A stretch of DNA of 64,000 nt from Klebsormidium nitens. Lineage: Eukaryota > Plantae > Klebsormidiophyceae. Every line of letters starts with the position of its first letter. The first letter of the stretch is position 1. Location: contig DF237009.1 of the NCBI GenBank assembly GCA_000708835.1, positions 186,001 through 250,000 of the forward strand, written 5' to 3'. The notes beneath the pieces are model-generated. The model was not told the DNA's origin and made no database searches. It was given only the letters and a program-made list of their open reading frames with translations. This document shows, in pieces, positions 61,302-62,927 of this stretch. The translations under genes were made by a program, and so were the position numbers.

Positions 61302-61407
61302 TCGTAGCAACTATGGCGCACAGCACGCAAAGATGCAGGGAAGCTACAGGCGGTTCGTAGCAACTATGGCGCACAGCACGCAAAGATGCAGGGAAGCTAC
61401 AGGCGGT
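61302..61407 (+). repeat. Perfect 53-bp tandem duplication over the BTB start codon
   Basis: tcgtagcaactatggcgcacagcacgcaaagatgcagggaagctacaggcggt occurs twice; the first copy forms the uORF [15 protein letters not shown] (61313-61360). Confidence 0.95.
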
Positions 61408-62927
61408 AAGGCACCTCGAAAACAACTCGCAACCAAGGCGGCATACCGTCCAAAGTCTTCTCCGATGGAGCGCGACATTGCCAAGCTGTTCCTTCAGGAG
61501 CACCTGAACGACGTGGCCTTCATCGTGGGCCCGGAACGGTCGCGTCTTCCAGGCCACAAGGCAATCCTGGCCGCACGATGTCCCAAGTTTGAGGCTCTCT
61601 TCTCGGGAGGGTTTGGAGACTCCTCCGCAACAGAGGACGAGCTACCAGATGTGAATACCACCGCCTTCACCGCAATGCTGGATTACATCTACAGTGGCGA
61701 TGTAAGCGGCTAAAGGATGGGGTTTAGAAATTAGCTTGACTGCCTTCTATCACTGATGGTCAGAACTTGTTGAAGATACTCAAATAGTAGCATTGCAAAT
61801 ACTGAGCAGCTGAGCTTGGTAGAAGCATGGGAGCTAGAATATTTCATTGGAGGTGAAAAATCAAGGTGCTGGTAACACTAGTACTCTTTTAAAAGACTCC
61901 TGAGATCACAAGTAAGGTCTTTCTTAAATTTCTTGTGGTGCCAAATGACCCACTTTCTTCTCGCAATCTCTTCTTCTTATGACTCACAAACCCATCATAA
62001 CGCATCAAACATACTAATTGTAGATTCAACGAACCGGGCCCCCTTAACTCGCCTCGGGACGTATGCCTTGTGCACTCTTACTTGTCGGCCGTCTCAGGTT
62101 GAATGGAGATAGATCGAACTGCCGGTCACACGTGGTCTTCGAGCTAAAGTGGAAAATGTGGTGGATGCAGATGAGCTGCTTCAATGAGCTTGCGCCGGAC
62201 ACGCTTGCGGCGACCTTCGCCCTGGCGGACGAGTACATTCTGCCGCTACTCAGAGTGGGCTGTAAATTCGCGTTCACAGAAAGGGTAAGGTTCCAGTGCA
62301 GTGACTTCACGAACCCTGCCCGATTTGCCTGGCCCCTCCACCCCGGTGTCTTCGAGATTCGTCGAAGCCAAATGGATACTCGACAATGGCCAGTTTCTAC
62401 AAAGGTTTACTTTCTTGTCCAGCTGGGTCCTGCTGACAGCAACTCCACAGTTTTCTCTAGTAACCTAGCATTATATCCCAGCAACTCTATAGTTTTCTCT
62501 AGTAACACAGCAGTATATGCCAGCAACTCCACCGTTTTAAGCAACGCTATGCTTAACTTTTATTGGCGAGACTTCTTTGTCTGTCCTGATAACAGTTCAA
62601 CCTGCATCTTTGTAGTTTGCAGAAACCCGTACTAGAATTTTGCATCCTGAAATCTACCTAGGGGCTTAGGAGGAACCGTAGCTGAATGGGAGACCTATCA
62701 CCGTGCTGCACAAAATGTCTATTCTAAACCCGCAGATGCAGCCTACGAATGCGTGCGAGACCCTTCCCATCGTGTCAGGGCGTCCCGAGTGCGCGGAGCT
62801 GGCGCAAATCTGCGAGCAGTACATTGCCGACTACTTTCACGACTTTTCAAAAGAGAGTCTGAAAGTGCTGACGGAGGATCTTGACCTTTTGTTAGCCGTC
62901 CTCAAGAACGGCATCGCTCCCAAGTAG
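61366..62927 (+). CDS. BTB/POZ(-BACK-like) protein with an N-terminal histone H3 tail-like peptide (~213 aa)
   Basis: join(61366..61701,62171..62284,62736..62927). BTB motifs NDVAFIVG..RLPGHKAILAARCPKFEALFSGGFGDS...ELPDVNTTAFTAMLDYIYSG and LAATFALADEYILPLLRVGC. N-terminus is [26 protein letters not shown]. Confidence 0.88.
62437..62538 (+). repeat. 42-bp tandem repeat (~2.4 copies) in BTB intron 2
   Basis: cagcaactccacagttttctctagtaacctagcattatatcc-type units start at 62437, 62479 and 62521. Confidence 0.85.

Follow-up and report, generated by a model that had tools for sequence, protein, structure and literature searches.

Most known cases of histone mimicry are viral proteins, e.g. influenza NS1; a few are cellular. 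The cellular mimics of the histone H3 tail include PAF15/PCLAF and LIG1 (with UHRF1) and the automethylation site of G9a. These known mimics are about 4-8 residues long, are mostly regarded as convergent and copy either the A1-K4 end of H3 or the ARKS sites at K9/K27; PAF15, for example, starts with MVRTK. A second group of relevance consists of SPOP-type CUL3 adaptors, in which MATH is the substrate-binding domain. Histone mimicry has been reviewed (PMC8166343, PMC6028506). The gene described here touches on both groups. It is found in the alga Klebsormidium nitens, in a stretch of 64,000 nucleotides (contig DF237009.1 of assembly GCA_000708835.1, positions 186,001 to 250,000), termed the window, whose coordinates are used throughout, and its product represents a fusion of an H3-like amino terminal tail with a BTB domain.

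How does this locus compare with the described systems? As in PAF15, LIG1, G9a and the viral mimics, an H3-tail-like peptide is presented by a protein that is not a histone, where H3-tail binders might read it, and the homologue of one related alga (L001, below) starts with MVRTK, as does PAF15. Unlike the known mimics, however, the K. nitens tail is homologous to H3, is longer, is conserved at H3 positions 11-22 and has lost the K4, K9, S10 and K27 sites; in addition, it is carried on a cullin-adaptor-type scaffold and is kept across species. With SPOP and the plant BPM proteins, which are MATH-BTB adaptors of CUL3, the protein has in common the order of an N-terminal recognition element, a BTB domain and C-terminal helices. 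It differs in that it is only 213 amino acids (aa) in length, in that a disordered, H3-derived tail of 33 residues replaces MATH, and in its apparently lineage-restricted occurrence.

The gene product, read from ATG 61366 on the plus strand, aligns with the H3 tail without gaps and in register. Eighteen of its first 25 residues are identical to H3: the complete run of 15 at H3 11-25, together with A1, Q5 and R8. Positions 2-4, 6, 7, 9, 10, 26 and 27 are substituted, the changes including K4T, K9E, S10A and K27R, and K14, R17, K18 and K23 are retained. In a phmmer search of PDB sequences, residues 1-34 match H3 tail peptides (E ~3e-5) and residues 31-111 match the BTB domains of BTBD6, KLHL26, KLHL3 and SPOP, with SPOP BTB chains among the best matches (E ~1e-5). 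Pfam places BTB (PF00651) with an E value of 5.5e-14 on exon 1 and of 2.4e-16 on the full protein, where the score of 60.3 bits exceeds the cut-off (20.5) and positions 3-104 of the 110 profile positions are covered. The histone fold (PF00125) was not matched by Pfam in exon 1 or in the full protein; having no such fold, the protein cannot enter the nucleosome, and in this it differs from H3 itself. Starting as it does at the initiator Met, a 15/15 match in register goes far beyond what chance provides and cannot be a coincidence. The original prediction, made from the letters of the window, had described this register, the run of 15 identities, the four altered and the four retained sites, and a BTB domain directly after the tail with no histone fold; the gap-free alignment, phmmer, Pfam and the structural model given below bear it out on all of these points.

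The gene model consists of three phase-0 exons with GT..AG introns and encodes 213 aa. The span proposed originally, 61366-62927, holds as the extent of the gene but not as a single open reading frame (ORF), as two introns interrupt it. An RNA contig of run X6, which belongs to another study, joins 61701 to 62171 and 62283/4 to 62735/6 and includes all three exons. Another, from its sister run X5, is colinear over 61347-61595 and places the tail codons and the BTB exon on one RNA. The gene is transcribed and is spliced at exactly these junctions; a lack of expression, which had been named as a possible objection, does not apply. The sequence GGT/AAGG at 61406 was considered as a splice donor that would delete the codons for K14-A25, but the X5 contig reads straight across it. 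The public annotation (P0165) carries the same exons under the name 'BTB/POZ domain containing protein [Klebsormidium nitens]', which makes no mention of the H3 tail; its 224 aa exceed the 213-aa model by 11 residues, which are added by starting at the in-frame ATG 61333. Within the window, neither an H3 gene nor a second copy of the tail DNA was found.

The predicted fold adds to the resemblance with SPOP. An AlphaFold2 (AF2) model, based on an alignment of 40 BTB relatives, reached a confidence score (pLDDT) of 89.5, with residues 1-33 as coil (pLDDT 59-81), residues 34-150 as the BTB domain and residues 153-207 as helices. The top Foldseek match to this model is the BTB-3-box-BACK structure of SPOP, 4j8z (E 7.7e-10, TMt 0.73, 185 columns). 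The next matches include complexes of KLHL3, KBTBD2 and A55 with CUL3, and SPOP-CUL3 complexes are also among the matches. A MATH domain N-terminal to BTB was not found by Pfam; the 33-residue H3-derived coil is present instead. According to the model, then, the protein is a SPOP-like BTB/3-box scaffold devoid of MATH, with the tail in the MATH position. The earlier statement that no other substrate-binding domain is evident agrees with Pfam, which finds BTB alone, and with the AF2 and Foldseek results. By analogy with these adaptors the K. nitens BTB protein would bind CUL3; the exon-1 equivalent of the phi-x-E loop, located by eye and not by an alignment with SPOP, reads L-F-S.

Is the fusion confined to K. 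nitens? Relatives were sought by an exhaustive HMMER search with exon 1 plus a profile search, which yielded four related clusters. A search for H3(11-25)+BTB architectures in other algae had been proposed, and fusions of tail and BTB are present in three further related algal assemblies (L003, L001/L002 and L004; Table 1). In a further lineage (L005-L007) the tail is dead, and the dead tail is identical in three independent samples (L005:3476-3560, L006:2991-3064 and L007:284-357). L005 and L006 share synteny with the window, in that the gene upstream is 87% identical over 179 aa, and L004 displays weak colinearity with the window. Derived residues are held in common: A7C and K9E by K. nitens and L003, and Q5Y by L001, L004 and the relic in L006. 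The P-M junction before the BTB domain is invariant among the lineages. Taken together, the common derived residues, the invariant junction at Met34 and the synteny argue for one ancestral fusion and not for separate captures; independent captures in two clades were considered and are disfavoured on these grounds.

How did the tail originate? As the match begins at the initiator Met, the origin is probably a capture of the 5' coding end of an H3 gene that included the start codon. Such a capture had been the alternative named in the original prediction, and it stands as the probable origin; as a recent or neutral event it does not stand, since the capture is old and its core is under selection, as described below. 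The family of tail-BTB proteins looks lineage-restricted. A metagenome scan with a BTB-only profile, which is not biased by the tail, turned up only distant BTBs: its 12 loci have 33-47% identity, apart from a 16-residue match at 88%, and an H3-like tail is absent from every one of them. Searches with full-length P0165, which were word-seeded and limited in length, revealed no other close homologue of 123-392 aa.

The pattern of change in exon 1 bears on whether the tail is functional. Nei-Gojobori counts were made per region over exon 1 of the aligned orthologues. In the core, H3 residues 11-22, the window and L001, which form the most divergent pair, differ by 10 synonymous and 0 non-synonymous changes (10 and 26 sites, respectively), and the window and L003 by 3 synonymous and 0 non-synonymous changes; L004 has a single change, K18Q. 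The flanks, i.e. the N-terminal 10 residues and the linker, behave otherwise. Their proportion of non-synonymous differences (pN) is 0.62-0.67 against L001 and 0.21-0.36 against L003, and over all pairs it is 0.21-0.69, about equal to the synonymous proportion (pS), which suggests that the tail flanks evolve about neutrally. For the BTB part of exon 1, the ratio of non-synonymous to synonymous rates (omega) is 0.15 against L001, 0.28 against L003, 0.16 between L001 and L004, and 0.10-0.28 over all pairs. Its synonymous sites are saturated between lineages that share the fusion (synonymous divergence, dS, above 2). With its 12 residues, the core also exceeds every other invariant run of exon 1; the next, ILAAR, has 5. 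A Fisher test separates the core from the flanks (p = 2e-6) and from BTB (p = 9e-4). These counts indicate that purifying selection holds H3 11-22, and holds it more strongly than the BTB domain itself. Synonymous-only change further implies that the tail peptide is translated and constrained, and it speaks against the tail as an unused upstream ORF, which was also considered. The tail core is very probably a selected, translated and functional peptide. Within it, none of the four intact sequences departs from GGKA, K14 or R17; K23, in the adjoining part of the tail, is kept in K. nitens alone and is S or R in the orthologues.

Could the tail nevertheless be a functionless passenger, one that resembles H3 through recent origin or through repeated gene conversion from H3 genes? 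A start of the match at the initiator Met is what capture of an H3 5' end would produce, and H3-tail chimeras do occur in other proteins (P0125, and with repeated tails P0153 and P0155, described further below). The fusion is, however, common to lineages in which BTB dS exceeds 2. All 10 synonymous sites of the core differ and none of the 26 non-synonymous ones do, while the flanks of the same tail have drifted, and the untranslated relic in L006 has decayed. Synonymous-only change in the core next to neutral flanks is incompatible with a recent neutral capture, which had been raised as a possible refutation: the tail is present in orthologues, and its core differs only synonymously between the window and both L001 and L003. 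Base composition points the same way. The GC content at third codon positions (GC3) is 33-42% in the core, compared with 56-68% for the gene and 85% for a neighbouring exon, and the codons ACA (T11) and GCA (A15) are common to all four intact sequences. We infer that the core codons go back to a common ancestor and were not copied recently from H3 genes with high expression. Indirectly, the synonymous divergence, the low GC3 and core boundaries that do not shift between lineages disfavour repeated gene conversion of the core. A neutral chimera is thus very improbable and, we consider, already largely refuted.

Table 1. Position of the features of the tail-BTB gene in the window, and source of the related sequences
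Feature or sequence	Position or source	Strand	Remarks
Copy 1 of 53-bp tandem duplication	61302-61354	+	Perfect repeat; holds ATG 61313 and ATG 61333
Copy 2 of 53-bp tandem duplication	61355-61407	+	11 nt leader, ATG 61366, codons 1-14
Exon 1	61366-61701	+	112 codons; H3-derived tail, linker, first 2/3 of BTB; donor GTAAGC
H3-tail-derived N-terminal region, residues 1-33	61366-61464	+	Predicted coil (AF2 model)
Core, H3 residues 11-22	61399-61434	+	Identical in window, L003 and L001; K18Q in L004
Internal Met34 (MERDIAK...)	61465-61467	+	ATG invariant in five lineages; possible second start site in K. nitens
BTB/POZ domain, residues 40-145 of 213-aa model	61483-62269	+	Pfam PF00651; intron 1 (61702-62170) inside
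Exon 2	62171-62284	+	38 codons; BTB end; spliced RNA contig; omega 0.25 vs L003
Exon 3	62736-62927	+	63 codons + TAG; 3-box/BACK-type C-terminal helices; omega 0.19 vs L003
L003	One Logan run		78% identical in BTB; three exons intact; tail from in-frame upstream ATG skipped by automatic call
L001/L002	Two runs		Tail + BTB; BTB ~50% identical to K. nitens
L004	JGI metagenome		Tail + BTB; BTB ~50% identical to K. nitens
L005-L007	Three samples		Tail dead (ATG>ATA, 1-nt deletion, stop); BTB ORF starts at Met34 equivalent

The start of the gene in the K. nitens genome is complicated by a tandem duplication of 53 bp (2.0 copies, 100% match) that covers codons 1-14, the start codon included; the original prediction makes no mention of it. 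In the orthologue L003 the unit occurs once. As its two copies are identical, the duplication must be very recent. It is present in the reads: a contig of DNA runs X3/X4 crosses the junction (61325-61384) at single-copy depth, the 53-bp unit itself is at about twice the flanking depth in these runs, and the X5 RNA contig, which begins 8 nt before the junction, includes it. Two additional start codons lie in copy 1. ATG 61313 has the same context as ATG 61366 and opens an out-of-frame ORF of 15 codons, which closes with TAG at 61358-61360, 5 nt upstream of the tail ATG. ATG 61333 arose from the duplication; it is in frame with the gene, is the start used by the NCBI model and adds 11 aa. Which start codon is used depends on the position of the transcription start.

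Might the tail be on its way out in this genome? Initiation would then occur mostly at Met34 or at ATG 61333, and the protein would be largely tail-less or prefixed by 11 aa, in parallel with the loss of the tail in L005-L007. Reads confirm the duplication, and an RNA contig carries its junction. ATG 61313 has as strong a context as 61366. Met34 is invariant in all lineages and serves as the start in the lineage with the dead tail; one loss of the tail is already known. The duplication is perfect and very recent, however, and the tail codons are intact and encode the same core as in the orthologue. Both ATG 61313 and ATG 61333 lie upstream of the RNA contig, whose first position is 61347. This explanation also concerns one strain and leaves the long-term conservation unexplained. 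We regard it as improbable.

What, then, might a conserved segment of the H3 tail do in front of a BTB domain? In the proposed sequence of events, the 5' coding end of an H3 gene, with its start codon, would have been placed before a SPOP-like BTB/3-box scaffold, in the MATH position. Most of the tail would then have drifted, H3 11-22 being fixed by purifying selection. The core may act as a short linear motif that links the BTB protein to machinery gripping unmodified H3 around G13-K14-A15-P16 and R17-K18, and the likeliest partners would be the karyopherins of histone import, Importin-4/Kap123, Kap-beta2 and Imp-beta. Nuclear targeting or docking to importins is put forward as the main role of the tail, with a probability of about 45%. 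In H3, residues 11-27 are bound by Imp-beta, Kap-beta2 and Imp4; Kap123 binds residues 12-25, with K14 and K23 in pockets, and Imp4 binds 12-GGKA-15 (PMC7752055). The core falls inside this importin-binding region, and it is similar to the H3 nuclear localization signal (11-27) in containing 12-GGKA-15 and the K14 of the Kap123/Imp4 pocket. It differs from that signal in that the putative signal is on a non-histone cargo and in that K23 is not conserved in the orthologues. Nuclear targeting is favoured because the tail is the sole visible basic cluster in the 213-aa protein, because the K4, K9, S10 and K27 sites are dispensable, and because the lineage without the tail still has a low omega in BTB exon 1, which is consistent with an accessory role.

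This last point calls for some care. Where translation of the tail was lost, in L005-L007, the tail DNA has decayed and the omega of BTB exon 1 is ~0.1-0.16 against other lineages, a pairwise value that cannot isolate the time since the loss. The low value suggests that the role of the tail is accessory and that it is not the sole receptor of the protein.

Several observations weigh against nuclear targeting by a conserved tail. Twelve invariant residues, some of them non-basic, constitute a tighter constraint than most import signals require. K23, one of the two pocket lysines for Kap123, has given way to S or R in the orthologues, and L004 has Q in place of K18. No more than four intact sequences are known, and in effect they stand for two clades. 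Two of the four have different frame-breaking indels in exon 3 (L001:1653-1860 and L004:7677-7880), of +4 nt in L001 and +2 nt in L004. The pieces of exon 3 that flank these indels have an omega of 0-0.3 between L001 and L004; the two copies may have suffered recent damage, may be truncated at the C-terminus or may reflect errors of assembly. In K. nitens itself, a transcript that starts upstream of the strong-context ATG 61313 may give poor translation of the tail. In addition, the X5 RNA contig has C>T at 61400 (ACA>ATA, T11I in H3 numbering) at a depth of 2.2, which may represent a strain variant in the core or an error.

Another possibility is that a CUL3 adaptor uses H3 11-22 for substrate recognition, as a bait or pseudo-substrate gripped by an enzyme or reader of H3K14/K18. 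Candidate partners would be a GCN5-type acetyltransferase, a deacetylase or, if the tail is acetylated, a bromodomain or YEATS protein. The partner would be brought to CUL3 for ubiquitylation, or titrated off chromatin as by a decoy. The original prediction had likewise proposed a bait that could recruit acetyltransferases or acetyl-lysine readers to CUL3, or a decoy; the overlap of the core with the importin-binding region of H3 was not among its considerations. The tail occupies the exact position of MATH in SPOP, and no other substrate-binding module is seen in the protein. The non-basic residues held invariant suggest an extended, specific groove. K18Q in L004 would also fit, as K-to-Q is the classic mimic of acetyl-lysine. 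The core, moreover, covers the substrate footprint of GCN5, which recognizes G-K-X-P and contacts T11 to Q19 (PMC3344931). Set against these points are the low omega of BTB exon 1 in the tail-less lineage, which would be unexpected for a sole receptor (although a pairwise omega limits this argument), the very large and shuffle-prone nature of the BTB family, such that the association with the tail may be chance, and CUL3 binding, which is putative for this BTB. Such a bait is possible, though on balance unlikely. The wider proposal that Klebsormidium-type algae have ubiquitin-ligase adaptors with a captured H3 tail as bait, by which writers, erasers or readers of H3K14/K18 are delivered to cullin ligases or titrated off chromatin, is slightly more doubtful still. 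Nuclear targeting or importin docking is the reading we prefer.

Other features of the region and related sequences may be mentioned. The upstream neighbour of the BTB gene, at 57929-60121 of the window, has 83-93% identity per exon with L005/L006 and a GC3 of 85%. The BTB gene is 63% identical to its counterparts in L005/L006 and evolves much faster than this adjoining gene. Intron 2 contains a tandem repeat of 42 bp at 62437-62538 (2.4 copies, 85% matching). Among sequences outside the family, P0125 (563 aa, from a representative library) carries three H3-tail-like repeats ahead of a C-terminal region that appears, by eye, retroelement-like. P0153 (JGI, 193 aa) consists of four degenerate H3-tail repeats, and in P0155, an H3 from Chlorella ohadii, the tail is duplicated. 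The latter two indicate that duplication and capture of the H3 tail recur in other organisms.

Klebsormidium is a close algal relative of land plants. In its tail-BTB proteins, the segment of the H3 tail with K14, R17 and K18 is isolated as an independently selectable module, and it is 11-22 alone that is held fixed between lineages so divergent that their synonymous sites are saturated. This represents a natural experiment, for which the sister lineage without the tail provides the control. Should the tail be an import signal, the histone import pathway would be open to borrowing by non-histone proteins. Should it be a bait, the fusion would constitute a new way to build substrate receptors of E3 ligases and would add a new layer to the control of chromatin enzymes; such proteins would then form an endogenous and evolutionarily conserved class of 'histone-tail degrader'.

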